Below, one piece after another: positions 12,424 through 56,606 of a DNA stretch of 64,000 nt (positions are counted from its first letter, which is position 1; the number at the start of each line of letters is the position of its first letter). Source of the DNA: Paragordius varius (Eukaryota > Animalia > Nematomorpha); contig OZ176054.1 in the NCBI GenBank assembly GCA_964247055.1, positions 1,674,001-1,738,000 of the forward strand, read 5' to 3'. Under the pieces are notes generated by a model that made no database searches, was not told where the DNA came from, and saw nothing but the letters and a program-made list of their open reading frames with translations. The position numbers were made by a program, and so were the translations under genes.

Positions 12424-15030
12424 TTATGATAACAAAGTTTTCAATATGGATGATACAACAGTAACATTTACACTGTTTCCCAATAGCGCATATCGTTGTC
12501 GTGTCGTTATTTGAGATGGAAATTCTAAAATAGCAAGAAATAAAAAATTAATTCAATTAATATCATAAATAAAGAGGATCAATTTATAATAAGCGAATAT
12601 TATGCATTAAACTAGAGTATTTTGCACTCATGACTTTGTGGGCTGTTATATTTTTAGCATTTTAATGTAAAACAATTATCTAATACTAAATTATCATATT
12701 AAATTTTTCATTTTAAACATACGAAAATTGAAGAGTGTACTAAAAACATCAATGCGGGCCGCACGGTGGACATCACTGCGTTAATATGTTTAAAATTTAT
12801 TATACTATAATATGCCAACCCAATTCAATCAATTTCTTTTAGATATTTTTATTTAGCATAATGTTCCCAAGTTTAGTTAAAGAAGAATGTTAAATTAAAC
12901 TAGAATTGGAGTTAATAATAAAACTAATAATATCTCAAAATTTTATATACTAACAACGTAAATATTTAATAAAACCGAATTTACAAAAATATTAATAAAA
13001 ATAATAAACAATTAAAGTTTAACCAAATGTTTCAGGGTATCCAAGTAAAGATAAAATTTCTTTCGGCGTAAAAAATCGAACATAAAAATCATGCCCATAT
13101 GAAACAAGTGATTTTGTTTTTTGTAAACTCAATAAATAAATGAGCATATTTCCAGGAGTGTCATTATCTAACTTTTCATGATCGATTTCAATTCCATGTT
13201 TGAATTTGTTAGAATCGTACATTAATAGCAAGGATCCGGTTCCTTTGAAATACCGACCATAGCTATAATATATGAGTTTATATGCATATATATATATTTA
13301 TATATATAGTTATTTTTTTGTATTTCAATATTAGACGTGGGTAATTGGATTTGATAGGGTACAATCAAAAATTTAAGAATGAAATAGTTAAAAATTTCAT
13401 GTAACTCTAAAAATAAAGTAGTTGACTAAGAAAACAACTCTTTCATTAATAAAATAACATATTTTATTATATTCGATTATACAAATTGCCCTTTTATATG
13501 TATTATTAGGATGATGTTTGAGCACATACGATTATCACTTCATGCAATCAATATAATGCATTCTTAATTTAAATTTTTAAAATTTTTGAAAAAAACAGAA
13601 TATGACGCATAAAATAATGGATGAGAATTAAAGGACAGGATTGGAACCGGAACCGTTTGTAGTTCCAGGTTTTCATAAAAATTTTGGTTCCGGTTCTATT
13701 AATTTTTTGGTGAAAAATTTCGGCTTTAAGTTTGAATTAACCAATAGTACACTTCATAAAATCGTGATAGTAATTATAATATTTTGATAATGCAACTTTT
13801 CTCTAAAAATTATAAAAAATAGTTTACTTTCATTTGAACGATAAAAAAATGATTAAAAAGAGGGGGGAAAAGCTTAAAATTGTAAAAAAATAAAAATGGA
13901 ACCGTAGATAGTTCCAAAACGGTTCCGAAAATAAACAAACGTTTTCGGTTCCAATCCCCGTTAAAAAATAAAGGAAAAGACAAATACACGCTCTTTGATT
14001 CAATAAAAAATAAAAATATATGAAAAATTTACAGTGGCATATGGCATAAGACAATATTAGTCCATAAAAGAATAAAAAATTGGTTTTTTTAAAAAAAACT
14101 TGTTTCTATATAGACATATCCATAATATCTCCCCTTGTTTTTAAATAAAACATTTTTTTTACTTCTTTTATCAACTAATTTTGTTTAATGCCATACGCTA
14201 CTGTATTTGCATTAGAAACAAAAACAAACTTTTTTGTAAAACAGCAACTGGATGTTGAATCCATGGACACAATATCAACAACGTTAATATTTTTTTCCAA
14301 AGTTTCCAGAGGTAATATGTAGCTATGATTTCTACATTTATCACCGACAAATAAATCTGTCTGCATGTATTTTCCTAACGAATGATAAGTTAAACAAATG
14401 GCCACGTTTGAATGGCTATTTGGAAAATTTTCAAATATTTTATTAAAATCTTTTTGAGCAACCATATAATATCTTAATCTTGAATTAGGTATTAAAAATT
14501 CTGAGGAATTAACCAAATTCTCCTAAAAAGAAATTCCTTATAATTATGTACCTTAAAAGTATATCCGCATTGTGACAATGTTTGAATCAATAAATTGTGT
14601 GCAAGTGATGATTCAAAACCTTTGACATTTTCAACAAATATATATTTTGGAGAAAATTTCAATCTATAAACCTTTATATTGTACTTGGGGAAAATGGACA
14701 ATATATGCTTCAAAGCTTCACACCTTTCATCCGTAACATCAAGATTTTTACCTTGGCGTGTAAAAGGTTGACATGGTGGACTCATCATAAGCAAATTTAT
14801 TTTCCACAAATCTATTTGATCGGCAGATAATTTCAAATAATTATTTAATTTCTTACCTGAATGTTATTTTCCATAATTATAGCGTTAGGAAAATTTTTTT
14901 GTGAAACAATGTTGGCCAAAGGATTTATATCTACAGTTATAAGCTTAAAGTCTTGCAAATTTTTGCTAAGTGCAAATACATTTCCACCAATTCCATTGAA
15001 AAGGGATAAAACTGTAAACTGTTCTACCAT
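12424..15030 (-). CDS. TRDMT1: DNMT2 / tRNA (cytosine-38-C5) methyltransferase, 6 exons, about 355 aa
   Basis: Exons 14857-15030, 14685-14833, 14552-14663, 14230-14522, 13024-13262, 12424-12524 splice in frame (1068 nt). Motifs: I FNGIGG, IV SPPCQPF, VI ENV, VIII PNSRLRY, the DNMT2 signature CFTKNYGRY, RFFTPKEI and X LLGNSVNV. Intron 1 requires a TG acceptor. Confidence 0.93.
12630..12778. mobile_element. hAT MITE family A, partial copy in DNMT2 intron 5
   Basis: Right end GCGGGCCGCACGGTGGACATCACTG matches the family A terminus; left boundary approximate. Confidence 0.5.
13636..13960. mobile_element. hAT-type MITE family B (GGAACCGG-rich ends) in DNMT2 intron 4
   Basis: CAGGATTGGAACCGG ... 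CGGTTCCAATCCCCG; flanks ttaaagga / ttaaaaaa (6 of 8 match). Confidence 0.72.
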
Positions 15031-20693: not shown

Positions 20694-23600
20694 ATTCAGG
20701 ATATAATTAAACAACCAAATAAAACTATATAATACCATAGCTCTCTTTATATTTATATTTACTTATTTTATATTTTATCGTTTTTTTCAAAGTAAATATT
20801 TATTAGAGAAAAAAAAGCCTTCTTACTGTTTATGTTTAGGGGCACAAACTATTGCAATGTATTCCGGTAACAGCTGTTGATTTGGGAATTGATTATGTAA
20901 ATCTACGCTTGAAAGAAAAGCCGTTTGTGAAGGATGTGTCTGTATGTTGCAAAACAAAAAAAATGAAATTATTATATATAATTCAGCAAAAATTATATAA
21001 ATTTATTATAATATAATATTTCGATTACTACAAGTAATCTTTGTCAAACGTAAAAATAAAATTAAAATATAAACTAAAATTAAATAATTTAAATTTTATT
21101 TTTACGTTTGACAAAGATTACTTGTAGTAATCGAAATATTATATTATAAATAATATTTATATAATTTTTGCTGAATTATTCCATATATAATAATACAATC
21201 ACACTTCAGCGTAAACAATATCCAAAAAGGAAATATTTGCTATATATTACCATTTACAATTCAAATTCACCCTTAACCAATTCAAATTCACCCCTCAAAT
21301 AAAAATTTTGTTTAAAATTTAAATAATATTGAAAAAATAATAAACTATGCCATAATGATATATTTCTCATTAATAATAAGTAATATTAGTTCGAAAACAC
21401 ATAATTTATTTTTAGGGTGAATTTGAATTGTTCGAGGGTCAATTTGAACTGTAAATGGTATATATAAGAGATTATAAGCTATTTTTTATTAATCATTTGC
21501 ACGCCATTTTCATATAACAAAATTATGAATAATATTAATTATTATTACTTTTAAACACGATTTGGGGTAAGAGTAGTATTTTTTGATAATAACCAATACT
21601 TAATTTGATATATAAAAGAGTTTAAGATATTACTAAAAATATGTCCATCGTTTTTTAGTGTTATTTTAATTTATTGCATGTGAATATTTATTGGTAAACA
21701 AAAATAAAATTATAATCCAATAATCCAAATAAAATATTATATTTAATATTCTACAGATTACTCTAAAATATTCGAAAAAAAAATTATTATTTTATTTTTT
21801 GCCTTTAGCTCATACAATAAGTTGGTTACCAAGTAGAATTGACTTTAAAGAAAGTTATTTAATTATTTTTTTTTCATTTTTCACAAAAAACATCCTTTAA
21901 TAGAAGAAAATTAAATTGTGATTTTAATCGCTGAGAGATTCTAAAATATAAGAGAAACATTTTAACAGGCAATATATAAAGCTTATTAGGTAAATAAGGG
22001 AATTCTAATCCATGGTTTTTAAAAAATTCCAATTATTTTTTTGATATACCATTTACAGCTCAAATCCCCCTTCGAACCTCTGAAATAAATTACGTGTTTT
22101 TAAATATATATAAAATTACCTAGGTTTTTTACGTTGTTTAATAATATTATACTGGAAGAAATAATAGCCTATCCTTAAACATATAATTCATGTTAATAAT
22201 GAGTTATATTAGCCCGAAAACAAATTTTTAGGTGAAAATGGTAATATTAATCTATGGCCCCTTTAAATTAAATTTAGAAATTACTGCCTCTTATATAAAA
22301 AAAAATACTTAAAAAAATTCAAAAAATAACGATCAAGTAATAATTTTATTACAAACATCAAAGTTTTTTTGTGCATTTATATTTATAATTTAAAAAATAT
22401 CATTTAAGCGAGAAGCGCGATAAGAAAAAAAATAATACATCAATATAATAAAATGGCAAAATAAAAATTAATAAATAATTATTTGTGTAATTAAACATAT
22501 TATTTTACATGGATCCATCCCAGCGTAAGCAGATTTTTCGATTCCTTAAAATATACCATTTCCTCTTCGTTTACGGCGGAAAAACTGTCAGATTTACCAG
22601 TTTGCTTCGGTATTACCAAATGCGTAACCGTAAAAATATTTTGGCACTAGGAAAAATTTTTTTAAAAATTTTACTTTTTTAAAAAATTGATTTTTTTGGG
22701 TTTTGGATTGCGATATGGTGATCAGAGCTATATATATTAATTGGTAATAAACCAATTATATAACATTTAAAACGAAATTAACTATATGGTTAAGGCAGGA
22801 AATCAAGCTTTTCAAAAAGTATGGTTGTCTTTGTATAAAAATATTTAATTCTGTTAAAACTCATTTTGTATATATATATATATATATTAACATTTAATTA
22901 TCACTGTCTAAAAACAAATACCATTTTTCAAATGATTTAAATTTAAACAGAAAATAATTGTGAAAGCAAAAAGCATGACAATACTTACCAATTTACCAAA
23001 AAGATGGCCCCCAGTTTCAATATTTTTATCGGTATTGGATTCGGCTAATGATAGAAAGATTGGGACCAAATTTTTAGGCACCAACATTTTACGCAATCTA
23101 CGGGTAAAGAAAATCAAATTTTTAAGCTGTAAAGTACAAGATTAAGTAGGAATTCTTAAAATAAAAAATCAAATTTGTACAAAAAAATCACAATTATTTT
23201 TGTATAATTAATTTGTTTTTTTATTTTTTAAACTAGTATGATTGTAACAATAATTTTCGTTATAAAACCGATTTCTTATGGACCATATTCAATCGTACTA
23301 AAAAATAAAATAAAATCAAGCGAAAACGCCGAAAATTATACTACATTTTACATAAACGCTATTAAAGTATCTAACCCATCAGTTGGTGAGGGGGTAGGTG
23401 ATTCTATTAAATTTTTAGGTTTCAGTTCACGAGAAGGTATATTGAGATTTTTAGCCTGCAGATTGCTTTCAGGAATTGAATCAGCATTAGAAGGATTAAT
23501 AATTTGATTTGAAGATTGTGGTGATTTGATAGGATGTTCATTATTGGCTAATATATATTTAAATTTAAAAACTATGAAAGAATTAGAAAATTAATTGGTA

Positions 23601-24229
23601 GTACACGCACTTTTATTGTCAAATCATGAGTGTGAAAAAAATATAGATGAAAAAATAATTTTATAATATATATACAATAACTGTTGCTGTATGCGGTTGA
23701 ATAATGATTTTCATTGGTATATAATGATTGATTAGGAGTCTTTGAGGTTACATTTTCATAAAATGATCGTCGTTTCAAATCGCGTTCACGTTCAATCTAA
23801 TTTTTACAATTTTATAAAAACCTGTTGATGAATTATGACTTCCTGTTCTTGAGCATATTTGTTCAGAATTTTAGTTTTTAAAATTTCGGCTCTCGGCAAA
23901 ACATCCTTAAGAGCCTATAAAAACAATTAAATATACTATTTAACGCACATTTTTTACAATATTTTTTTCAATGGTTGGAATATCTTTGTAGGAATGATGT
24001 TCAGGAATTTTTTCAAAAAATAAGCTAGATAATTGAGTAAAGTATACGTAATATATTTATAGTAAAGCATAAAGGCTTTCTCGACGTCCCCTTCTTTTTC
24101 ATATATTTCGGCCATTGAAAGCATCTCCGGACCGGACCGAAAATATTTTATCAGCGTAAATTGAGGTTGGATTTCAACTTCTTGAAAAAGTTGCCTAAGC
24201 CGATATTCTGGATTTAGTGGATCATCCAT
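17927..24229 (-). CDS. STAMBP: AMSH/STAMBP JAMM deubiquitinase, 10 exons, about 390 aa
   Basis: Exons 24048-24229, 23949-24024, 23822-23914, 23676-23796, 23376-23547, 22989-23097, 22509-22646, 20827-20939, 18257-18359, 17927-17992; all GT-AG and phase-consistent. N-terminal [21 protein letters not shown] residues IETGG and [16 protein letters not shown], second Zn site DLH / C / GFHYH. Confidence 0.95.
18783..19030. mobile_element. hAT MITE family A, degenerate copy in a STAMBP intron
   Basis: TGTCCAACACAATTGGCTGCATGGGCCAC start and GACGACCCTG end; interior similar to 2112-2394. Confidence 0.6.
20979..21179. repeat. Near-perfect inverted repeat (about 85-bp arms, about 28-bp loop) in STAMBP intron 7
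   Basis: TAATTCAGCAAAAATTAT...GATTACTACAAGTAATCTTTGTCAAACGTAAAAATAAAATT is followed by its reverse complement with one small indel. Confidence 0.92.
21248..21460. mobile_element. MITE with about 45-bp TIRs (TACCATTTAC...) in STAMBP intron 7
   Basis: TACCATTTACAATTCAAATTCACCCTTAACCAATTCAAATTCACCC versus the reverse complement of GGGTGAATTTGAATTGTTCGAGGGTCAATTTGAACTGTAAATGGTA; TA-rich flanks. Confidence 0.8.
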
Positions 24230-24286
24230 GCCAAAAACTATTTTGGAATATTTTTAAAAAAAATCATCATATTAACTTTTGAATGA
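24230..24286. promoter_or_regulatory. 57-nt spacer between divergent start codons (putative bidirectional promoter core)
   Basis: STAMBP ATG at 24229 (-) and ANAPC16-like ATG at 24287 (+). Contains a small inverted repeat CCAAAA-acta-TTTTGG at 24231-24246. Promoter function is inferred. Confidence 0.5.
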
Positions 24287-24646
24287 ATGACAACCCAACT
24301 CCCTAAACCATTTAAAATTCCATCTACATCTTCCTCAACATTAAATTCTAATAATTTAGAACCAAATACACCAACTAATAACGTGAGAAAGTGTTTGTTC
24401 AAATCCCCAACAAGTTAATCGTTTATTTATTTTTTACAGATATAAAAATTGTCAATCAAGAAGCCGACAAAGCAGTAATTGAAAGATTTATTAAAAGTAT
24501 TTTTTTATTTATTATCTAAAGATCGTACAAATAAAAACGTGAAATTAGTAAAACAGGCTATTGAATCATTAGCTGAAGACGATTGGTTATATACACCGAC
24601 TCAAAAAATATCGCAACCCTTAATTCATAACCAGTTCAAATTTTAA
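24287..24646 (+). CDS. ANAPC16: APC/C subunit 16-like small protein, 3 exons, 102 aa (not in ORF track)
   Basis: Exons 24287-24413, 24440-24496, 24522-24646 with 26- and 25-nt GT-AG introns give one open frame. Ser-rich N-terminus, VRKCLFKSP (recalled human PRKALFTYP), IERFI (SERFL) and AIESLAEDDWLYTP (LVEELEADEWRFKP). Confidence 0.8.
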
Positions 24647-24648
24647 TT

Positions 24649-27600
24649 ATGGGCAAAAAAGATATATTGAAATTTGAGGGGAGTAGTTTTTTTCGGCAAA
24701 GAATTGTTTTAGCCACGCTATCTAATCAACCAATCAAAATTACTCACATGAATTCTTATGATTTAGAGCCTGGTATCAAAGATTTCCAATTATCTTTGTT
24801 GCGTATGATTGAACAAATTTCAAGTGGTGCTTTGATTGAGTTAAATGAAACAGGTAACTATTACAAAACACTAAATATCGTAATTTATGGCGTGGAAAAT
24901 AGGCTACCATTCTGTTAACATTTGTTTTTATTTATAGATGCTATAATTTTAAGATTTGTTATGGTTCATTGGTTTTCACGTAAGAATTTTTAACATTTTT
25001 TTAATCAAAATCTGGGAAATTAATACAAATGATGTAAATGCTTAGTTTTCGAATGGACGATGATTATATTTACCCATTACTCATATGTTGTAATATATTT
25101 TTTTTGTAAATTATTAATCCGGTGGTTTTTCTCGAATTCGGTTTTTCCGAATTTAAAAATGGAATCGTAAAGGTATAATTCAACTGGTGTGCTTTGTAAC
25201 TGTAATTTTGTATTGCTTTCGTTTTCCCCCATTTTAAAATTTGTGAAAAAAATAGGCAAAATTTTCCATTGACAGAAACGTATGACTTATTTTCTCATCA
25301 TGACTCTTTTTTGAGATAAAATATAATTAATTTTATATAGAAAAACTAAATTTTATTTTTAGTTTTAGGGCTCCAAAATACCCACAAATAGTAAGATTGT
25401 GGGAAGATATATTCAACTTGAAACGTAATTTTACCTTAAAAAATAGGATTGAACCGACTTTATTTTGAAAACAAAAAACTGCATTATCATCAACACATAT
25501 ATTAATTAGTTTATATGCACGCTATATTTACTTTGAAAGTTATTATAGAGTAGGATTAATTTTAGGCATATATATATATATGGTTTTTTTGATTGTCTCT
25601 TGTTAATTTTGATTCTCATGGATTATAGCGACAGATTTATACTATAAACCGGGCCTTTTAACTGGTGGTGCATTTGAACACGGATGCTGTATTCAACGGT
25701 CTTTGGGTTACTATTTGGAAGCACTTTTGTGCCTTGCACCCTTCGTTAAGAATCCTATTAAAGCTCGCCTGTTTGGTATAACCAATGATAATGTCGATCC
25801 TTCGGTTATTTTTTTCTTTCTAAAACAGCTAAAATTTTTGAAAAATGATAAAAGTTTTGATTAGGTTATAAAGCAACGTTAGATTTGGTTTAAATAGTAA
25901 TGAAAAAAAAACTATAAATTAATCAATCTAAAACGACTTTAAGATTTTAACCCAAAATTTGATCAAATTTTCGGGAATTAAAATAAAATTCAAAATGATG
26001 GTTGATATTATCAACGAGAAGTAAGTAAGTAATATTTTATGTGATAATAATACAATTCTCGTGTAAAGTTTAATTAATGATAATATCAACATGGGTGAAA
26101 TATTGCCTAAAGGTATAATATTGATAAAATAATTAAAACTAAATATGTTCAAAGAAAACTGCAGTATATCAATATAATATCCTTTTTCATTTTCATTTAC
26201 ATCTACTTTTATGTCCTAGGTCGATGCAATCAAAGCTTCAAGTTTACCCATAATTAAACGTTTTTTACATTGGGATGATGGTGATATGGATGTGCCAAAT
26301 AAATTGCAGCATCCTTTAATTCTTGATATACGCATAGTTCGTAGGAGTTTTCCTATTATCACAAAAACATCTTTAAACAATATGAATGAATCTACAGTCA
26401 CGATTGATCGCAATAGTAAATTGGGTGAAATCTTATTCACTTGTCCTGTGTATAGGACAAACCTTATCTCCATGTATAATCCAATCAATTTAATTCCCAA
26501 CGCGACAAAGTCTACTCTTAATGATGGTATAAACTCTTTAACAGAAGAAATAGATGCCATTAATGAACCATTTTCTGGTCATAATGTGGATGAGAATGAA
26601 AATGAGAAATATTCGGCAAGGGAGAAAGGTGTAGACTCTTGTGATTTATTATCTTTTAAATTGATTTGGAGACAGAAATTCTACAACATAAAAAATTATG
26701 AATTGGTTGGTTCGTTAAAGCGTTTTTGAATACATTAAGTATGTTGGCATCGGTCAGATGTAATGTAATGCCTATATAATTATGTATGAGTTGAAAAACG
26801 AATAATAACAATAATTAAATTTAAATTTCAGTATATGTTGGTAGAGGATTTAAAAAAAATTTACATTTTTTTACCCTTTTGACAACAACCATCTATCTAT
26901 CGTGTATCAAACATACGTAGTTTTTTAACTGGTTATTTTCAGCGATTAGACTTCATGGCGATAAATACAGTTATCGGTCAGATTTAGCCCTTATTATAAA
27001 CAACATTCTGTTTAACACAACATTTATTTATGAAAACTTACGTATAGAAATTTTTGTAATTTAATATTGTACTTGCAAAACATAGCTATCTTAGGGAAAA
27101 TATTTTTTCTAAAATAGGTTTAAAACCTATTATTTCATATAATTGCTAAATTGGGAGTGTCTAACTATTCTTAATTATATATTTTGATAACATTCTTTAG
27201 CAAACTTTTTTTTGCAGAACGAACAAAATATAATCAAGGGTTTTAAAATAAAGAAAAAAGCAGGTTTTTAATTTTCAAATTCTTTATTTATGTGCAGAAA
27301 TGAAAATATCTGGGAAAGAAAAGATGAGACAACGTCTTAAATCAGCGGGGACAGGACCGAACGCATATAAAATTGTAAAGATTCGTGGGATAGCATATAC
27401 TGTACGTACCTCGCCCGCCATAGCTAACCGCATAATTAATGAAGCACAAACTTTGCTTAAGAATCATGGATCTACCAACAATTACATACGTGTCGATAGT
27501 TATAAAAGTTTGTTCTTTATTTTTTTTCACTTTTTACTTTACCGGGGAAAAATGTGAAACCATAAAGATATGTAACGTTTAAAAACTAAGGACAAATAAA

Positions 27601-30600
27601 TATTTTATAATATCTATATAAGGAGTTATCCTTATTTAAACCTTGATTTTCTATACATAGACCGACCATATCATAAAACTATTACAATCTATAATTGGTA
27701 TTAAGTATAATACCAATTAACAACTCCTTTTCTTAGGTTTTATATATTTAAAAAAAACGATGCTTAAAAAATGGTTTGTCTTTTCATTCAATGTTAATAA
27801 AATGCATTGCTATAATTTTACAAATAGCATATTGCCATACTTGTCATTTATTTTGGTGTTTTATCATTAAATTATTTTCATACAAATTTAATTGTTATTC
27901 CTTTAACATAGTTATTGGTAACAATAATTTAGCATTCTTAATGTATTGCAAAATATCCACATGCGCTGTGAAAAAATATTTTTTAAGCTAACAATTGGAA
28001 TAATTAATTAGCCCTTTTCCAATTATTCATCAAAAAAAGACAATACTTTTTCCAAAGGGGAACATTAATATAAATTATTTCAATAATTTAATATTACGAT
28101 GAAAAAAAAATCAAGATTTAATCATTATAAATGTAAAATTAACAATTTAATGCTAAAAAATTATTTTAGCAGTGGTGTATAATATGGTGACTTTGCTTGC
28201 CGCATTTTTGATAAAAAACCAACGGTCTAAATTCAAAAATATATGAGCATTAATAATTTTTTTTATTTGAGAATTTTCCTACTAATTTCTTCCGGGCTAC
28301 ATGTTGGGCATCCCTGATTTAAATTTTAGTAAATGAAAAAAAAACAAATTTTCGGTTTGAAAAATCTTGAAGATAATGGTTGCTTATTTCTTACACTATA
28401 GTTGGAACTAGGATTGTGCATCTGACTGCTTTTTCAAAAAAGTCCGGTCAGACCCGGTCATGACCACTTTTTTCTTAAATTAATATCATGCGATATTGGA
28501 TAAAAATAATGTTCAAACGATACTTGCGTTTCACTAATAATGTTATGTTTTTTCTTAAAAGTTTGTATTATACATTTTTTATATTTATATTTACAAATAT
28601 ATTCAATCAAATTTAATCAAGATTTTGTTTTTAAATGAATTTTGCTACATGTTTATGGCCTTTCTAAATCTTCAAATACATTGTTTTTAATACTGGATAT
28701 TTTGAATTTTTATACTTAGTTTGTTTTACGCTTTCTTTCATCCATGAATTAATATCCAATTATAAGATTTTTTTTGTTTTATTGCACATTCACATATATA
28801 GAATAATTGCATATTTTGCAAAGTGCTCGATTGTTTTGTGTTTTGTAACAATCGTATATGCTTAAATGCTAATTTTATAAGGATGCATGTTTAACAATTT
28901 TATATTGTCAAATTAGCATATTTAAATATTTATTTTATGATAAAAAATGTATCAAAAACAAACTCCTCCTATCTCTTTTTCATTACGACCAATTTTTCAA
29001 AAAACAGCTGTTTTTTAAAATGTTCATGGTCAAAAAATAAATAGTCACTGACCTGGTCATGACCCGGTCAGCACAACCTTAGTTGGAACACTAGTTAGTG
29101 TATTGAAAAAAAACACAAAACTTTGAATAAAAAAAACAAAGTACTGTAAGAAAGGAAAAAATTGTTTATTCCACATTTTGTTGTTGTTTTTTACCTTACC
29201 TTACACTATTGTGTTACAAATTGACCAACCAACTATAATAGTGGGATTTATGCAATTATTAAAATCCATGAAAAAAAATTTTTTTTCTAGAAAGTCAAAG
29301 TGGGCCCACCCCGGGATTTGGTTTATGCCTGTATGCTTACACCTTGAATGGATGTGTTTATTGTGCCGAATATGCTTCATACGCCACTGATAAATCAAAT
29401 AATAATGAGAATGAAAATGAAAACGATCAAAATTATTTGACTAAAAAGACCTTTCAATTAGCTACGCCTGAGGAAATTGCTCAAGCCACAACTTGCCAAT
29501 TATTTAATGAAATCTATATGGTAGGTAAACATTTTTTTGTGTGAGACTTAATATTAATTACAATAAATTTTTATATAATTTTATAATATTGTCCAAAGAT
29601 AACTAGAATATTTTAAAATTAACTCATATTTCAGTTATTGATTCGGATTTTTTATGTGTTACTTGTGCCCATTTTTTTAGTAATTCTGTTGTTTAATAAA
29701 TTAATTATTGTACTTTCATACGAGTTCTTACTGGCTAAATAATTTAAAATATATCTGTGTATAATTTGTCCAATAAAATTCTTGCTAGCCATGATTTTTT
29801 GGGAATGTTTTTTTGTAATAAATAAATCTACCCCATTTTTACGCAAGGAGGGGGGGGGGTCTAGATGAGCGCTTTGGTTTAATCTAAGTCACCGAAATTA
29901 TAAATTAATGAAAATTTACCACTTTTAAATTTTTTAAATTGCCCCAAAGCCCATTTTTATTAATATTCAGATTTATAAATGACATGTTTGTGATACTTTT
30001 AATTCCCGATATCATATAATCCATTCTTTAACAATTGCAAGTCATGATTGTAAATATCTGCAATTTTATAAATATTATCATTATTTTTTCATCTACTTTT
30101 AACTTTTTTATACATTTAACATTCTCATGTACGTCGTGAATATGGGAGACAATAAAAATAAATTTATTAAAATATCAAATTTTTTGCACTCAGGAATTTT
30201 TTATAAAATAAAGTTTAAAATAAAGTAAAACAATTTATTCTGTGCCGCCTTTCAGCTTTATATTTAAATTTGAAAAATATTTTTTCATTATTATTTATAA
30301 TAATGTATTTTTAAATCATTTTTAGTTTTTCTATTCTGTTTTTGTCTTTAGGGCGGTTCAACCGATTCCTGGAATCAAAGCTTGGCTCTTCTTTACATGG
30401 CTTTGGCGTCAAATAAAATTACGCGTATTATGTCAGGCCCATTTACCCCATACACCCTAAAAAATTTGAGATTCATCGAGGACATATTTAAAGTAATCAC
30501 ATATTTTTGCACCTATCTAAGAATACGGACAGAGTATCTTGCTAAATAAATTTATTTTGAGTTAAGTATGTTAAATTGGGCCCTTTACCAACCCCATAAA

Positions 30601-31424
30601 TGAATTTGAATGTCGGTAAATTAGATGATTCATTATCCGCTTGGCTTAAAAAATGAATTTAATTAAATATTTATGATCTAAATTTGATTTAGTATGAAAT
30701 ATCAATTAAAATGAAATATAGGTATTGATAAAAAATAATGATTGAATTTACCCACGAGCTTGTAAGTTGTGAGAATGTATATTTCAAAAAATGATAATAA
30801 CTCAAAGTTTAGGTAGGGCCTTATAATGAAATTAAAAAGTTTTGAATGCTGTTTTTAAAAACTCATCATAAGAGGAGTCTATTGCATAGATCAGGGATGT
30901 TCAACACAAATGGCTTCGCGGTCGCATATATATATACATATATATATATATATATGGGCATTCATAAGGAATTTATTACAGATTTTAAACATAAAACTGT
31001 CAAATGCAAACACAATATAGCAATTTTTTCCAGTTCTTGCCGAGATTGGATAGACTTATTTAAAAAAATTTTTTGGAGGAAAATTTTAAGCATATTTTTA
31101 TAATTTACGTACGGGTTTGTAAAATTTTCTGCATCCTGCACATAAAGTCACAGAAGGCCGCTGACCCCTGATGTAAATATTTTCTTCATAAAGATTGACT
31201 AAATATTGATTGATTCCATAATATAAAATTTATATTCGTTTGCATTTTAGATAAAATACAAAATTGATCGGTATCAAGATGTATTTGAAAGCGAACGCGA
31301 TACTACAAATAATAAAATTCTAAATGATTATTCCAATAATTGTAAGCAAGAATGCCGTCCCGTCAAATATGTTGTGAGTTGTTTGGGATCCGGATTTTAT
31401 AATATAAATAAAACATTAAAATAA
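24649..31424 (+). CDS. RCL1: RNA 3'-terminal phosphate cyclase-like protein RCL1, 7 exons, about 514 aa with insertions
   Basis: Exons 24649-24853, 25629-25804, 26220-26628, 27298-27507, 29291-29520, 30352-30492, 31251-31424 are phase-consistent (1545 nt). Motifs: FFRQRIVLATLS, LGYYLEALLCLAPF, GITNDNVDPSVD, KIRGIAYTVRTSP, PGFGL, GGSTDSWNQSLALL, SCLGSGFYNINKTLK. Confidence 0.95.
28170..28316. mobile_element. hAT MITE family A, short degenerate copy in RCL1 intron 4
   Basis: CAGTGGTGTA start and CGGGCTACATGTTGGGCATCCCTG end. Confidence 0.5.
28409..29081. mobile_element. Non-autonomous hAT-type element with perfect 8-bp TSD in RCL1 intron 4
   Basis: TAGGATTGTGC...GAC / GTCAGCACAACCTTA imperfect TIRs; subterminal CCGGTCATGACC repeats; TSD GTTGGAAC at 28401-28408 and 29082-29089. 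Confidence 0.88.
30892..31170. mobile_element. hAT MITE family A in RCL1 intron 6
   Basis: CAGGGATGTTCAACACAAATGGCTTCGCGG ... CATAAAGTCA...GACCCCTG; TA-centred 8-bp flanks. Confidence 0.8.
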
Positions 31425-33166: not shown

Positions 33167-34606
33167 TTATGTTGAGCTTTTTTGTTTCCTGATTTTTTCC
33201 AAAATCAAATTTTTGACGAATTCAAAAGTTATCATAGGATCCATAGTTCCATCAATGTATTCTAAAAAAAGAAAATTATATGTTAAAATTATCAATGTTG
33301 TCCAAATTTGTACAAAAAAAGGATATTTTGCGTACGATTTGGCCCGTGATCGAATGTAATTTAATAAATATGGATTGTGGATTAATATAAAATATGATAA
33401 TAATAAGTAATTCAGAGGATAAACCAGGCTTAATTCCAATTTAATTCTCTATCTTACATCTGAGTCGTCTCATCGTATGTTAAATAATGTGATATTTATG
33501 ATTATTAAATAGGATAAGGTGATGATAAATAGCCACAATATAATGATGACATATGAAGTCACAAAAATTATTTTATGATTTTTTTTAATTTAAATAAAAT
33601 ATGTTTCAAATCATCCACCCCCAAATATCGTAATTTATAAACGTAGGATCCGTAACCGGTTTAAACGACAGCATAAAAGTGTCCTTATAATTAAATTATC
33701 TTTGATTATTTTCACTCTTACAATTAGTCAGTTAAAATCAATCAATGTTTCGATTATAAGTCTTTTCGGGAAAATTTTACGCAAAAATTTTAGGGATATT
33801 GTCAATCTTATTTCATGATTTTACGGTTTAAATTTGGATTCCCAAGCCAATCCAAGTGGTATGTATATATCCTTTTATAAAATTAATAATTTTTAGATTT
33901 TTAAAAATGCGTCATTTAAGTAGGACAAAATAAAAAATAAAATAATTTGAAAGATATATTATTTCATCTACAAACCAATATCGTTTGATTCTGGGCATTC
34001 AATATTCTTAGCTTTGAGATCATTAAGGTATTTAACATATTGAGGCCAAACATATTTATCAAAGTTTTCGGGCGGTTCAGGTGGTTCATATGTACGCATT
34101 CTAATTTATAAGAAAATATAATATTTTTTTAACGGATATTGTAGTAAAATTCCTAAATATTTAAAATTTACCGGCGGCGTCTTCGACATTCATAATAATT
34201 TAGGGTTAAAAAAATTTTAAGGTCAAATATTGACGTCAGTGAAGATTGAAATAAAAGAATCCCTTCGATAATTAAAATGAATGACGTATTTTGGAGATTC
34301 GAACAACATTCGTCGACATCCGTTTTAAGTTTTTCCCAATCAAAAGCATCCAATTCTAATAATATAAAATAATAAATTAACCATCCCAATTGTGATAACA
34401 AATTGTGTCATCGTATTTAAGAAGATTAATATCCTGTGATTTTAAAAAATCTTACTTTATAATAATGATCAACACTAAATATTTTTGAATTCACAAAGTT
34501 TTTTTGCAATTTTTCTGCCAAACACGATTTTCCACCATTTGTCACTCTTAATTATAAATTATTTATATTACCCACTAATGCCAATTATTAAAATTGGATT
34601 GTACAT
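33167..34606 (-). CDS. NMRK1: Nicotinamide riboside kinase, 6 exons, about 193 aa
   Basis: Exons 34572-34606, 34456-34546, 34382-34433, 34172-34355, 33976-34100, 33167-33261; introns 25, 22, 26, 71 and 714 nt. P-loop IIGISGVTNGGKS, ILIIEGILLF, ECRRRRMRTYEPPEPPENFDKYVWPQY, YIDGT. Confidence 0.93.
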
Positions 34607-37009: not shown

Positions 37010-40000
37010 GTAACTGATTTTTAGTCCCTTTTTAAAAATGTGTTTAACTGAACTCGTATGTCTTCTTAAGTTTTTTTAATCAGCTCCAAAACCACGCCAT
37101 TTTTGTATGGCGTCTCAGTTTTAAACCGGTAAACCCCTACCCATAGATCTATATGGAAAAGCGCTGAGTTAAATTCTTTGAGAACAAATATTTGGAATCA
37201 TCTTTGATACCATCGTCTCATGGGGTTTTCGAAAAAAACCTCAACACTAAATAATCGTTATTGATGGATTGGAAGCATAACGGCCCTAAATTAAAGGCTG
37301 ATTAAAAAAGGCCAGACCTTAATTTTTATCCAGTTACGGGTAATATTTCAAGCTCTTAATGAACATATATGGCTTCATAAATTTTCTGTAAATTAGTTCC
37401 AAAATAACGCAATTTCCATGTAGTGGGGCAGTTTTTGGCGGGTAGCTCCTTACCCAGGGGGTAAAAAAAGCGTTGGACAAAATTGTTGTCTTTATTTGGG
37501 GAATGTCTGGAATTATCATGGATTCCATACGTTCCTATTAGATACATAGGTTTTCCGAAATTCGGCTCCAAAGGCATACTGTATTGATATGGTGTCGCAG
37601 TTTTATGCGGGTAGTAACCAGGGGCGAAACAAAAAACGCTCGATTAAAATTTTTGCCTTAATTCAGGTATTACCTGGAACTAATTCAATATGCTCTCGTG
37701 GGATTTTCGGAAATTTCCAAACCAATAAGTCATTCTATAGTGGTGTATTTTTCCAAGGGCCTAATTAAGGGGTAATTTTATAAAACCTACTTGTATTTTT
37801 ACCTTTTTGCAGGTAATATTTTAAGCCGTTATAGAAATCTTATGGCCTGATAGGTTTTCTAAAATTTGCCTCCAAAGGCATGCTGTATCGATATGGTAGT
37901 GCAGTTGTAGGCACCCCTACCCAGAGGCCAATATAAAAAAGACGTTCGATAAAAAATTTGCTTTTATATGGGAATTCCTGGAATCATCATTCATTCCATA
38001 TGTTCTTAATAGTTTATGAAAGTAGGCTTCAAAACTAAATAATAGTTCAATGATAGCGCATTTTTAGGGCTGAAAGGGCCTAATTAACGGCTAATCAAAA
38101 ACCGCTCGACTTAAATTTTTGTCTTTTTACGGGTAATATTTCAGGCCCATATTAAATTTATGTGGTCTGATAAGTTTTCTGAAAATTAACTCCTAAACAA
38201 CAATTTATGGGGGCGCAGTTTTAGGCGGGTAACTCCCTACCCAGAGATTGATACAAAAAAGCGCTTGATTTAAATTTTTGCCTTTTTACGGAGAATACCT
38301 GGAATCATGATTTATTCCATATGCTCTCATTAGTTTTGGAAAAGCCTCAAAATCATTCTATGGTGGCGCATTTTTCAGGGCGAGAAGGGTCTAATTAACG
38401 GCTAATTATAAAACAGTACGATCTAAATTTTTGCCTTGTTACGGGTATTATTTTAAGCAGCTATTGAAATCATACGGCCTGGTAGGTTTTCTGAAATTTA
38501 GCCCCAAAGGCACGCTATTTCGATTTGCCGGGTCAGTTTTTAGCGGGTATCTTCTTACCCAACAGCTATCATCCAAGAAATGCTTGACTAAAATTTTTGC
38601 CTTTTAACAGGAAATACCTGGAATCCTTATTGAAATTTAACAGTCTCATACCCTGGGCGAAAAATAGATTAAAAAAATTGTTTTGTGGACTTAATTTTTT
38701 GAAAAAAGTGGATTTTACGGGGGGGCGGGTAAAAAGAGGGCCTATATTAAAAAAGCCTATGTTCGGCGCAATCGAAAATAAGTAAAAAGAAAACCTATTT
38801 GAAATAAAATGGTCCAACACGCTTTCCGGAAAATTGTCTAAAGTACACGATTTTTGTGGACTTCTGTTTTCTAAAAAACCGTTTTTTACACGACCCGTCA
38901 TATCGAAATAGCGTGCCTTTGGGGCTAAATTTTAGAAAACCTATCAGGCCATATGAGTTCAATAGCTGCTTAAAATATTACCCGTAACAAGGCAATAATT
39001 TGGTGCGGTTTTTCAAATTGGCCATTAATTAGCCCTCCCCCCGTAAAATGCGTTACCATAGAATGACTTTTTAGATTTGATGCAATTTTTCCAAAAATTA
39101 ATAAGTGCATATGGAATTAATCATATTCCAGATATTCTCTTTAAAAAGGCAAAAATGTGATTTAAGCGCTTTTTTTGGATCAGCATCTGGATAGGGAGCT
39201 ACCCGCCTAAAACTGCGCCACCATAGTTGTTTAGGAGTTAATTTTCCGAAAACCTATGAGGCTATATAATTTTTATAAGGGCCTGAAATATTACCCGTAA
39301 AAATGCAAAAATTTAAGTCGAGCGGTTCTTTTAATTTACCCCTTAATTAGGCCCTTGCCTTGAAAACGCCACCATAGAATGACTTTTTGGTTTTCAGCAA
39401 CTTTTCGAAAATCCCACTAAAGCATATGGGATCAATCATGATTCCAGGTATTACCCGAATTAAGGCAAAAAATTAATCGAGCGTTTTTTTGTTTCGCCCC
39501 TGGTTAGGGGGTTACCCGCGTAAAACTGTGTCCCCATATCGATACAGCATGCCTTTGAAGCCAAATTTCAGAAAACTTATGAGACAATGTGAGTTAAGGG
39601 CTTAAAATATTAATACTTACCCCTTAAAAAACAAATATTTTAGAATAAAGGGTTATTTCAATGAGTCGCTAAGAAAAGTTTTACGCCCTGAAAAATTCGC
39701 GGCCATAGAACAACTTTTTAGTTTTGAAGCAGTATTTCCAAGAACTTATTGGAACATATAGACATTATTATAATTCCAGATATTCCCCATATAAAGACAA
39801 AAATTTTGCCAGACGCTTTTTTATACCCTCTGGGTAAGAAGCTACTCGCCAAAAACTGCGCTACTATATAGAAATTGCGTTGTTTTGGGCCATATGAGCT
39901 CATTCAAAGTTCGAAATATTACCCGTAACTAGGTAAAAATTTAGGTCAGGCGTTTTTTATTAGGCGTTAATTTGGGACTTTTATTATAAAGAAATACGCC

Positions 40001-40260
40001 AACATATAACGATTATTTAGTTTTGAGGCATTTTTTCGAATAACCCATGAAACGATGGTATCAAGGACGATTCCAATTATTTTCCCTATAAAGGCAAAAA
40101 ATTTAACTTAGCGCTTTTTCCATATAGGCCTATGGGTAGGGGTCTACCTGTTTAAAACTAAGACGCCTTACAAAAATAAAGTGGCTTTGGAGCTAATTTT
40201 CAAAAAGAAGCCATACGAGTTCAATATAGGCTTTAAATATTACCCATAAAAAGGTAAAAA
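37010..40260. repeat. Large foldback structure: two inverted arms of tandem about 310-320-bp units around a spacer of a few hundred bp
   Basis: 38460-38560 is the reverse complement of 38890-38975, and GAACTCGTATG (37050) pairs with CATACGAGTTC (40212-40222). Unit markers GGAAT recur at about 37195, 37509, 37676, 37980, 38301, 38620, and ATTCC at about 39125, 39441, 39773, 40069. Outer ends approximate. Confidence 0.88.
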
Positions 40261-41600
40261 TTATAGTGCGATTTTTTCCGTTAGCCGTCAATTTGGGGCC
40301 TTCACACCAGTAAACAATATATTAGTATGAAAGCACAATTTTGAAACTTATATGAAGCACCGTTTTTAAAATCCTATATGATCATAGCTATTAAATAATG
40401 TTTCGAAATAATCCACATATATGGATCATTTTGTTAAACCCTTTTTTCAAATAGCGCCCCCTCCCCCCACCCCAAGAAGTCCAAAGGATTTCCTCAGCTG
40501 CGTAGCAGCACGAGATTTACGCTAATATATTATAAAAATCCCAATCAATGAGATCTATATGTATGCAAGTTTTGAAATATCTTTTCCATATCGGTGACAA
40601 ATTTTAATAATTCGCACCTAAAAACCTCCAATTTAATTCTAGTTTTATTTTTAAATTCAATTTATGCCTCCTTTTTGGGAACCACTGCTTTAACATAATA
40701 CTTTTTACAGCAAAATGGTGATTAAATTATTTCCCATGCACTTAACCAATGTATATGTAGAGGTTTAAAATTTTACTGTGTGATCAATGAAAGTTAACTA
40801 GTGAACTTTATAACTAATACCATTGAATTAAAAATTCAATATACAGTAACAAATGCTTAAAAACAACAAATGGATAAAATTAAACATTTCCCCATTCTTT
40901 TAACATAACCTTATTTGAAAAAACATTCTTTAAAGTCATACGCTACTGTAATTACAGCTTCCCCATTACACAACCACCATCTTAAACATATAAGAAGGCA
41001 CTAATTGAAATACCAATAAATTATAGCAAAATTAATAACTATAACACTTTCTCCCACACTAAATCACACTAAAATAAGGGGGTTTAGAGTCAAAATCAAA
41101 ACGCATTTAAACATAATCATCGTATATATATTACATTTCTACTATATTTTCAGTTGCAGGCATTAATTTATTAGGAGGTAAAAATTCTGAACTTAGTTTT
41201 TACCCTAATAAAGAAAAACGTGTCAAGCAATTAATTAGTTAGTTAAAACTAATAATAATTGGAAAAATTATTTAAAGAGAGAACTAAAGATATGGATGAG
41301 AAAACTCAGGTTATATATCTGATATATATAAAAAAAAGATTAGCGTTTTTCTGTCAATAAAATAATCCCAAACTATTTTGTTTAAAACTAAAAATTAATA
41401 ATCGTTTCAAATTGGATGATTAAAACAGTAAATATATATTTTTTTGGAATTACCCTATAATTTTAGATAGAGGCTCATACATTTTTAATGTTATAATTTG
41501 GGAGAAAGGACATTCAATGTTTATTACAACCTAAAACGAGTTTTTCTGTAGCTTTTTTTATATCTGATTCTTATACTAACCGTAACACCGGTGTTTTAAC

Positions 41601-54879: not shown

Positions 54880-55260
54880 TGTCATGAGGTGCACATATAA
54901 TTATATGTCCCAAAGTTCCAGGACCAATGTCACTTTGTGGGATGAAAACTGTATTTTTTAGGCTTTATTTAGATGGAACAATACTAATTTTCATTTTTTA
55001 ATACATGGGATTAACACTTGGATATACATATTTATTTGAGAGCTCCGATTCAAATTGTCCAAGGGGATCTCATGCCTGTTTAATAAAACTATTGCAAAAG
55101 TTTGCACTTATATAACGATGATGCACCGAAATATAATGAAAGATTCATTAAAAGAAAACTTAATATTACTTATTTTATGGACAAACCTCAAGGTAAAAAT
55201 CTAATCACCATGCCATATGTACATTGGCTAAATATAAAAATAATGCTAAATGAACCACTT
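54880..55260 (+). pseudogene. Possible decayed Penelope-like reverse transcriptase C-terminal fragment
   Basis: Frameshifted pieces RLYLDGTI, YLFESSDSNCPRGSHACLIKLLQKFALI and YNDDAPKYNERFIKRKL...LITMPYV recall the FLD..I / YL..S.HP / NGYP..FI...I.LPY order of PLE RTs. Weak similarity. Confidence 0.3.
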
Positions 55261-55273
55261 TTTCTGTTTATAT

Positions 55274-55555
55274 CAGGGATGTCCAACACAAATGGCTTTG
55301 TGGGCCTCATTTTTTGGATCGAGAAATATATGAGCAAACAAATATTTGATTTGATTTTAAACATAAGAATGTAAAAATTACTATTTATTTAACAATTTTC
55401 GCTAGTTCATTCCCAAAATTTGGAAAAACTTAATCGGATGACTTGTTTAAGAAAATCAAATTTACTGAATTAAGTGAAATTTTGTATTTGAGATTTCTCG
55501 CGGTCTGCCATATTTTGGAGGGCTGCATTTTAAACAAATGTTTGGATTTAAATGA
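55274..55555. mobile_element. hAT MITE family A, right end decayed
   Basis: CAGGGATGTCCAACACAAATGGCTTTGTGGGCC left end; right boundary approximate. Confidence 0.65.
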
Positions 55556-56606
55556 AGAATTAGCTTTAATTTTAGCGTTAGATTCAAAAATAAACGATAT
55601 TTTGCTGAAATGTTATAAAATAAAAATGGCGTCGAAGTAGTTTAATATGAATCTTTTTTTTATCAAAGCTAAAATTTATTCAGATATTGTGGTTATATAA
55701 TTTTTATTAAGATAGTAGGCATAAACTTGTATTGGAACCGTTTCTTTTGGTAGTTTTTCAAAAATATCCTCTTAAATATAGTTGGTCTCTAGATACCCCA
55801 ATCCGAATTGAAGTGATTATATTTTTTCAATAGCTTTTTAAAAAATAAATTTTGAAAAAGTGCCCCATATGTGTTGGAGATTTTTTATTCTACGTCACTG
55901 GTACTTGTCAAAAAAAGTTTGAAGAACTGAATAAAATATTTTTTTTCACAAGGGTCGTGTACCATAAATTACCGACAAATATTGCATTGTTTATTGCAGA
56001 TAACTATAATATTCTAAATACCATGAAAATGGGCCCTGATTTGAGTATTACTGATTTATATTGTATTAACTGTGAAATCCAACTTAACAATTGATACAAT
56101 ACTTCATCTTTCCAAAGTGTTCAAAACTATAAATTATTGTTGGAAAACGGTTTTTTTGTAAAAATGGAACATAGACAAAAAACTATACGTCTGTCCAGTC
56201 TCACTTGGCAAATACTTAATTTATGTCTTTTGATAAAAACGTCAAATTTAGTGCATTAAACAAATATTATATCGTTTGGTACAAAAAACCCGTTATTTAG
56301 GAACGAATCCTGAAAAAAATCGTTATATATATATATATATATAATAAATAAAAAACAGTTTATTATGATTTATCAATATTAATAATTATATTTTTTTTCA
56401 GTACGCACAAATAAATACTGTAGCCAAAGTTATTTCATATTTTAATAGGATGAAAATATGTCTCACATGACCGTTTACACTAGGACACCCTTGATACAAT
56501 TAATATTAGTGTCTTGAATATTATTTCGTATCAAACGCCTTTTTATTATTATGTTTACGAACAATTTTTTCCCTCAAATTTTTGCACATCAGTTAAGCAT
56601 ATTTTT

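Follow-up and report, generated by a model that had tools for sequence, protein, structure and literature searches.

Two nucleotides between a putative APC16 gene and RCL1 in the horsehair worm Paragordius varius: a candidate bicistronic mRNA

How is a gene expressed when its start codon lies two nucleotides beyond the stop codon of another? The question is raised by a locus in the AT-rich genome of Paragordius varius, within the 64,000-nt stretch of DNA analysed here, referred to as the window. A short upstream open reading frame (ORF) on the forward strand ends with TAA at 24644–24646, two T residues follow, and the ATG of RCL1 occupies 24649–24651 in a different frame (offset 2). This arrangement, first described in a sequence-only reading of the window, is reproduced from the sequence. 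An assembly artefact at the junction is ruled out, since an independent DNA contig from another individual (sequencing run X5) covers 24599–24870 and shows that there is no assembly join. The upstream ORF reaches 102 codons when its three exons are joined over two GT-AG micro-introns, and is truncated if either is kept in. The coordinates of the locus are collected in Table 1.

Table 1. Features of the junction between the upstream ORF and RCL1 (positions in the window)
Feature	Position	Strand	Remarks
Gap between AMSH and upstream-ORF start codons	between ATG 24229 (-) and ATG 24287 (+)		57 nt; no + strand AG
uORF	24283–24306	+	7 codons; out of frame, overlaps start of 102-aa ORF; weak context (-3 T, +4 A)
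Upstream ORF exon 1	24287–24413	+	weak start (-3 T, +4 A); Ser/Thr/Pro/Asn-rich N-terminus, then RKCLFKSP
AUG-free stretch	24290–24648	+	all three frames; 359 nt genomic, 308 nt spliced
Upstream ORF intron 1	24414–24439	+	predicted 26-nt GT-AG micro-intron, phase 1
Upstream ORF exon 2	24440–24496	+	
Upstream ORF intron 2	24497–24521	+	predicted 25-nt GT-AG micro-intron, phase 1
Upstream ORF exon 3	24522–24646	+	predicted helix, EDDWLYTP motif after helix, TAA end
Spacer	24647–24648	+	TT, 2 nt
RCL1 exon 1	24649–24853	+	strong start (-3 A, +4 G); in-frame stop 21 nt upstream
RCL1 intron 1	24854–25628	+	775 nt
RCL1 exon 2	25629–25804	+	followed by 415-nt intron
RCL1 exon 3	from 26220	+	
Further RCL1 exons	near 27.3–27.5, 29.3–29.5, 30.35–30.5 and 31.25–31.42 kb	+	inner boundaries approximate
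RCL1 stop	31422–31424	+	

The downstream gene is identified as RCL1 by Pfam matches to RTC and RTC_insert. Its first exon retrieves yeast Rcl1 (E = 7e-16) and the human protein (3e-14) from PDB, all five matches being of the Rcl1 type. RCL1 seems to bear long Asn/Glu/Ser-rich insertions (26286–26630, 29380–29450 and 31251–31350, + strand); the yeast and human proteins used for comparison measure 360–410 aa. Other individuals carry deletions of 3 nt at 26372 and at 26384, which is what a coding region would lead one to expect. An intronless RCL1 on a metagenome contig (L001:890–2100), in which TAA and TAG are apparently sense codons as in ciliates, was of no use as a synteny test.

The first point to settle is whether the upstream ORF is a gene. 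When up to two T-rich GT-AG introns of 21–34 nt are permitted, only 2 (0.2%) of the 906 ATGs taken from control stretches reach at least 102 codons. The ORF also shows coding-type conservation. Within its exons, runs X1 and X5 are listed with five substitutions (24340, 24400, 24613, 24619 and 24634), all of them third-position and silent, against 21% of possible changes expected to be silent at random, the count having been taken from 40 of 276 variant rows and one of the five lying within an indel pair. X1 carries compensating indels, +1 at 24618 and -1 at 24626, which preserve both frame and stop; X5 has a -1 indel and a second gap. Divergence is 1.6–2.2% in pieces over the upstream ORF versus 5–8% in intron pieces, and recognition by a protein language model scores 2827, where 2300 is reached by 9% of shuffles. 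The two ORFs do not overlap, and each is under coding constraint. From its sequence features the upstream ORF is very probably a real gene.

The contrary reading holds that there is no separate working gene here, only a chance ORF in the RCL1 leader or a segment fused to RCL1 by splicing. It can call on the exon-by-exon homology searches described below, which found no homologue for pieces of 18–42 aa, and on splices that are in frame on paper, from the phase-1 donors at 24414 or 24497 to the acceptor of RCL1 exon 2 at 25628. Chance origin is opposed by the control rate, the silent substitutions, the compensating indels, the lower divergence and the language-model score. Fusion would delete RCL1 exon 1 and the C-terminus of the upstream protein, and with them the first 68 residues of the RTC domain of RCL1. 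We regard this reading as extremely unlikely. The earlier statement that no splice joins the two frames thus holds for a 28-nt GT..AG intron over the junction (24634–24661), which is out of frame and whose GT is lost in X1 and X5, but not for the skips to 25628. Readthrough from the upstream ORF into RCL1 is rejected, as the frames differ and an in-frame stop precedes the RCL1 ATG.

The upstream protein is probably APC16 (ANAPC16), as the sequence-only reading had suggested. The resemblance was noted by eye: a length of about 100–110 aa, a low-complexity N-terminus and, in the same order, three motifs which we take to be characteristic of APC16, namely RKxLF..P, ERF and a C-terminal helix ending in acidic-acidic-W-x-aromatic-x-P. 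The middle part looks shorter than in the human protein. In the family, the C-terminal helix binds the TPR arm of the APC/C, with which APC16 co-purifies. No tool returned a match to this label when the exons were searched singly as pieces of 18–42 aa: Pfam, PDB sequences, 1.84 billion representative sequences, a word-index search and two ESM Atlas searches were all blank, the one match among the representatives, to an ankyrin-repeat protein, being dismissed as a chance match. Modelled by itself, exon 3 is predicted as a single helix (pLDDT 69), for which fold searches gave no structural match, the piece being too small to be informative. The blank searches say little, because the query pieces comprise only 18–42 residues. 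In most animals, similarity searches have led to APC16 being scored as absent (PMC3195147). Were the assignment right, a small conserved gene that 25-nt introns conceal would have been recovered, and this would bear on that apparent absence.

Does RCL1 share the transcript of this gene? A single mRNA for both ORFs is likely, to judge first from the sizes of the introns. The length of RCL1 intron 1 and its distances from the RCL1 ATG (205 nt) and the upstream ATG (567 nt), which the sequence-only reading had reported, are confirmed. In AMSH the introns lie at the following distances from the ATG, with lengths after the stroke: 182/23, 281/34, 408/25, 548/134 and 854/278; in DNMT2 at 174/23, 346/21, 479/29 and 801/967; and in NMRK at 35/25, 151/22, 225/26 and 435/71. 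In these genes the six introns that lie less than 300 nt from the ATG all measure 22–34 nt, and the three beyond 540 nt all measure 134–967 nt, in models that were made by hand and frame-checked and that form a small sample of three genes from one window. Counted from the upstream ATG, the introns of the locus fall at 127/26, 210/25 and 567/775; counted from the RCL1 ATG, the long intron falls at 205/775. As the sequence-only reading had argued, RCL1 on its own breaks the micro-intron pattern and conforms only when distances are taken from the upstream ATG, which favours one transcript.

A second indication is that AATAAA is missing between 24530 and 25982, so that the first copy beyond the upstream stop, at 25982, lies 1,336 nt away; the mean spacing of the signal in the 64-kb window is 281. 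NMRK too has no AATAAA near its end, and its start is also weak (-3 T), so that neither signal can be strict in this genome.

A third comes from run X6, which bears the same species label and is clearly diverged. At the RCL1 start 56 of 65 bases match, and the codons after it read AALTGQPIKIR in X6 and ATLSNQPIKIT in the window. An 825-nt X6 contig includes 119 nt upstream of the RCL1 ATG at a depth of 214; as the X6 contigs total 29 Mb, a depth of this order suggests that X6 is probably RNA. A search for RNA runs from the species itself found none, and runs X1, X3 and X5 have contigs that cover introns and show no splice joints, marking them as DNA. The 30 letters before the RCL1 ATG in X6, examined by hand, contain no ATG, and the RCL1 frame is closed in them. 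One possible translation, I-Y-N-V-N-N-L-stop followed by 5 nt, aligns in register with I-H-N-Q-F-K-F-stop followed by 2 nt in the window, whilst a second frame is likewise open. The contig is suggestive of an upstream ORF and a shared transcript in the relative. The proposal of a common transcript thus gains indirect support, through the intron-size pattern, the absence of a nearby canonical poly(A) signal and the relative's probably-RNA contig over the junction.

The X6 contig can also be read in favour of separate, overlapping mRNAs. It begins 119 nt before the ATG, and exon 3 begins 127 nt before the ATG in the window, as though transcription of RCL1 began separately within the upstream gene, for example near intron 2 or in exon 3, with an AUG-free leader, the 3' UTR of the upstream gene extending over RCL1. 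The micro-introns that closely follow the ATG of NMRK agree with such an arrangement, as does the finding that at most dicistronic loci of flies one or both of the genes also have a monocistronic transcript (PMC4528330). However, contigs of the X6 type end at branch points, for example at a retained 25-nt intron, so the end of this contig need not be a start site. Separate mRNAs would leave unexplained both the absence of ATG from exons 1 and 2 and the long first two introns of RCL1, and the upstream mRNA would have no canonical poly(A) signal within 1.3 kb. This explanation is considered unlikely.

Given a shared mRNA, the distribution of AUGs bears on how ribosomes would reach the second ORF. 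No ATG occurs in the AUG-free stretch of Table 1, where 2.9–6.8 would be expected (P from 0.03 to 0.001 under four nulls). Codon shuffling gives an expectation of 2.9 (P = 0.027), base shuffling 3.6 (P = 0.019) and the rate in the coding exons of the window 6.8 (P = 0.001), whilst 359-nt windows lacking ATG make up 0.3–0.5% window-wide (P 0.003–0.005). Of the trinucleotides missing from the stretch, ATG has the highest expectation, and each of the five other permutations of A, T and G is present. For exons 1 and 2 alone the deficit is modest (P about 0.02). The AUGs at 24283 and 24287 share the same weak context, and the start of RCL1 is strong, with a purine at -3 as in AMSH, DNMT2 and the GPCR gene. 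The marks of leaky scanning, a mechanism that the sequence-only reading did not name, are present, the first start being weak, the second strong and no AUG intervening; together these features favour leaky scanning over trans-splicing.

On balance, we favour a single mRNA from which the upstream protein and RCL1 would both be made by leaky scanning, with or without reinitiation after the short uORF. We infer that one capped, spliced and polyadenylated mRNA carrying both ORFs would start in the gap beside AMSH, a minus-strand AMSH/STAMBP gene with a Pfam USP8_dimer match. The gap is presumed to act as a bidirectional promoter common to both. Its being common with AMSH suggests very short leaders, and short leaders favour skipping of the first AUG. 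Initiation at the weak AUG at 24287 would yield the 102-aa protein, probably APC16, while ribosomes that bypass this and the other cap-near AUG, at 24283, would meet none for some 310 spliced bases before arriving at the strong AUG of RCL1. Alternatively, the uORF would be translated from 24283 and scanning resumed to the RCL1 AUG; whether the uORF is within the transcript depends on the transcription start site. The 2-nt gap would then be a by-product of compaction and not a needed signal.

Another route on a shared mRNA is termination–reinitiation, which the sequence-only reading had envisaged: ribosomes finishing the 102-codon ORF would restart at RCL1 and make most of its product, the 2-nt distance from stop to start providing the coupling. 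TURBS motifs comprise an 18S-complementary UGGGA core in structure upstream of the stop. There is no TGGGA core in exon 3 upstream of the stop, and the folding of the leader is not unusual (z = -0.5); in place of a motif of the TURBS type, the locus displays the marks of leaky scanning. Reinitiation would require neither 300 nt without AUG nor a weak first start. An adjacent, out-of-frame stop and start do recall viral reinitiation sites, and the relative in X6 may retain a short gap (5 nt) in the same register, but reinitiation after long ORFs usually requires extra RNA elements (PMC10275272). As the principal route to RCL1 it appears distinctly unlikely.

The remaining proposal, an operon resolved by spliced-leader trans-splicing, would suit the tight packing of the genes, but encounters difficulties with its acceptor. 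The nearest AG upstream of the RCL1 ATG ends at 24634 within the upstream coding sequence, just as had been reported. It is also T-poor, with a T fraction of 0.27 where the acceptors of the two micro-introns have 0.68, and in the deeply sequenced runs X1 and X5 every contig that covers it reads AA instead. The only candidate left for leader addition is the cis acceptor of intron 2 at 24521, which is rich in T and whose use would give RCL1 a leader of 127 nt free of AUG. Near the starts of the upstream ORF and the GPCR gene there is no AG, and in NMRK and DNMT2 the AGs lie only at -30 to -35, so no general pattern of an acceptor before the ATG is apparent. The 2-nt gap has no room for a 3'-end signal, and none lies between the genes. 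No literature linking Nematomorpha with spliced leaders was found in a search that misses many journals, and an Rfam scan of the window, a weak form of evidence, gave no match. Trans-splicing at either AG thus seems very improbable, and leaky scanning on one mRNA remains the preferred explanation.

Several other features of the window were recorded. AMSH/STAMBP (-) and the upstream ORF (+) stand head to head at 24229–24287, so that a single very small promoter may serve three genes. In contrast to RCL1, NMRK (33968–34606, -) appears to have a start site of its own, to judge from its micro-introns (+35, +151 and +225) and from the ATGs that lie at -20 and -23. Intron 1 of DNMT2 (14834–14856, -) is predicted as a 23-nt GT..TG intron with a non-canonical acceptor, the frame being open through the gene. 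An AMSH intron holds a MITE-like hairpin at 20994–21161, with 75-nt arms that are 93% complementary and an 18-nt loop. A GC-richer foldback-like element of about 3.2 kb, whose nested inverted arms have their centre near 38,700, spans 37071–40296, and a short high-copy repeat lies at 22794–22850, its summed contig depth exceeding 20,000 in X1 and X5. Run X3, which carries another species label, covers 22600–28400 at approximately 3-fold depth with many pieces identical to the window, and could be a host or a mixed sample containing P. varius. Finally, between the GPCR gene and a C2-domain gene, 55040–56260 (+) contains a cluster of 50–95-codon open stretches of no assigned family, which may be a gene with micro-introns or else an old mobile element.

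It is tempting to look beyond the single locus. The pair might belong to a genome-wide class of zero-gap pairs, new for the phylum, and might itself use a start switch of three tiers, formed by the 7-codon uORF, the weak start of APC16 and the strong start of RCL1, to divide ribosomes between a subunit of a cell-cycle ligase and a ribosome-assembly factor, its layout being kept across distant horsehair worms; this is a doubtful extension, rather on the unlikely side. A stronger form may even involve general stop–start coupling without RNA elements of the viral type. In a literature search that misses many journals, no report was found of an APC16–RCL1 pair, or of bicistronic units or spliced leaders in horsehair worms. 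Should the favoured explanation be right, one more animal lineage would have two-gene mRNAs without trans-splicing, and an AUG-free first ORF combined with a long 'first' intron in the second gene would serve as a mark of shared transcripts in tight pairs of this genome.

A number of parallels can be drawn with known systems, and the mechanism of bicistronic mRNA is itself already known, this pair being a candidate for a further case. The spliced-leader operons of nematodes and tunicates likewise consist of tightly packed housekeeping genes on the same strand, but here no usable acceptor or 3'-end signal lies between the genes and the nearest AG is polymorphic. Also comparable are the dicistronic loci of Drosophila, another ecdysozoan, of which 159 pairs have been catalogued (PMC4528330) and in which two genes share one spliced mRNA with an AUG-poor upstream ORF; the fly loci stoned and Snapin are cited in PMC11892635 as cases of leaky scanning with the same marks. 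The present pair is absent from the text of the FlyBase supplement, where Rtc1, CG11130, APC16 and Rcl1 give no matches. Among 14 human bicistronic transcripts, MIURF-MIEF1, PYURF-PIGY, ASDURF-ASNSD1 and STREMI-SLC35A4 similarly place a complex subunit of about 100 aa before an unrelated main ORF, although the genes are different and ANAPC does not appear in the text of that study (PMC13303939). Bicistronic mRNAs read by leaky scanning are also known in green algae (PMC7896298, PMC11892635). There, as here, a short conserved upstream ORF with a weak start and few or no internal AUGs is followed, after a short gap, by a strong downstream start, the genes are unrelated housekeeping genes and trans-splicing is not, or in the present case very probably not, involved; one algal pair even includes a putative APC15 subunit. 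The horsehair worm locus differs in belonging to an animal, in being known from sequence alone, in its gap of only 2 nt, in the micro-introns of its first ORF and in its additional, overlapping 7-codon uORF.
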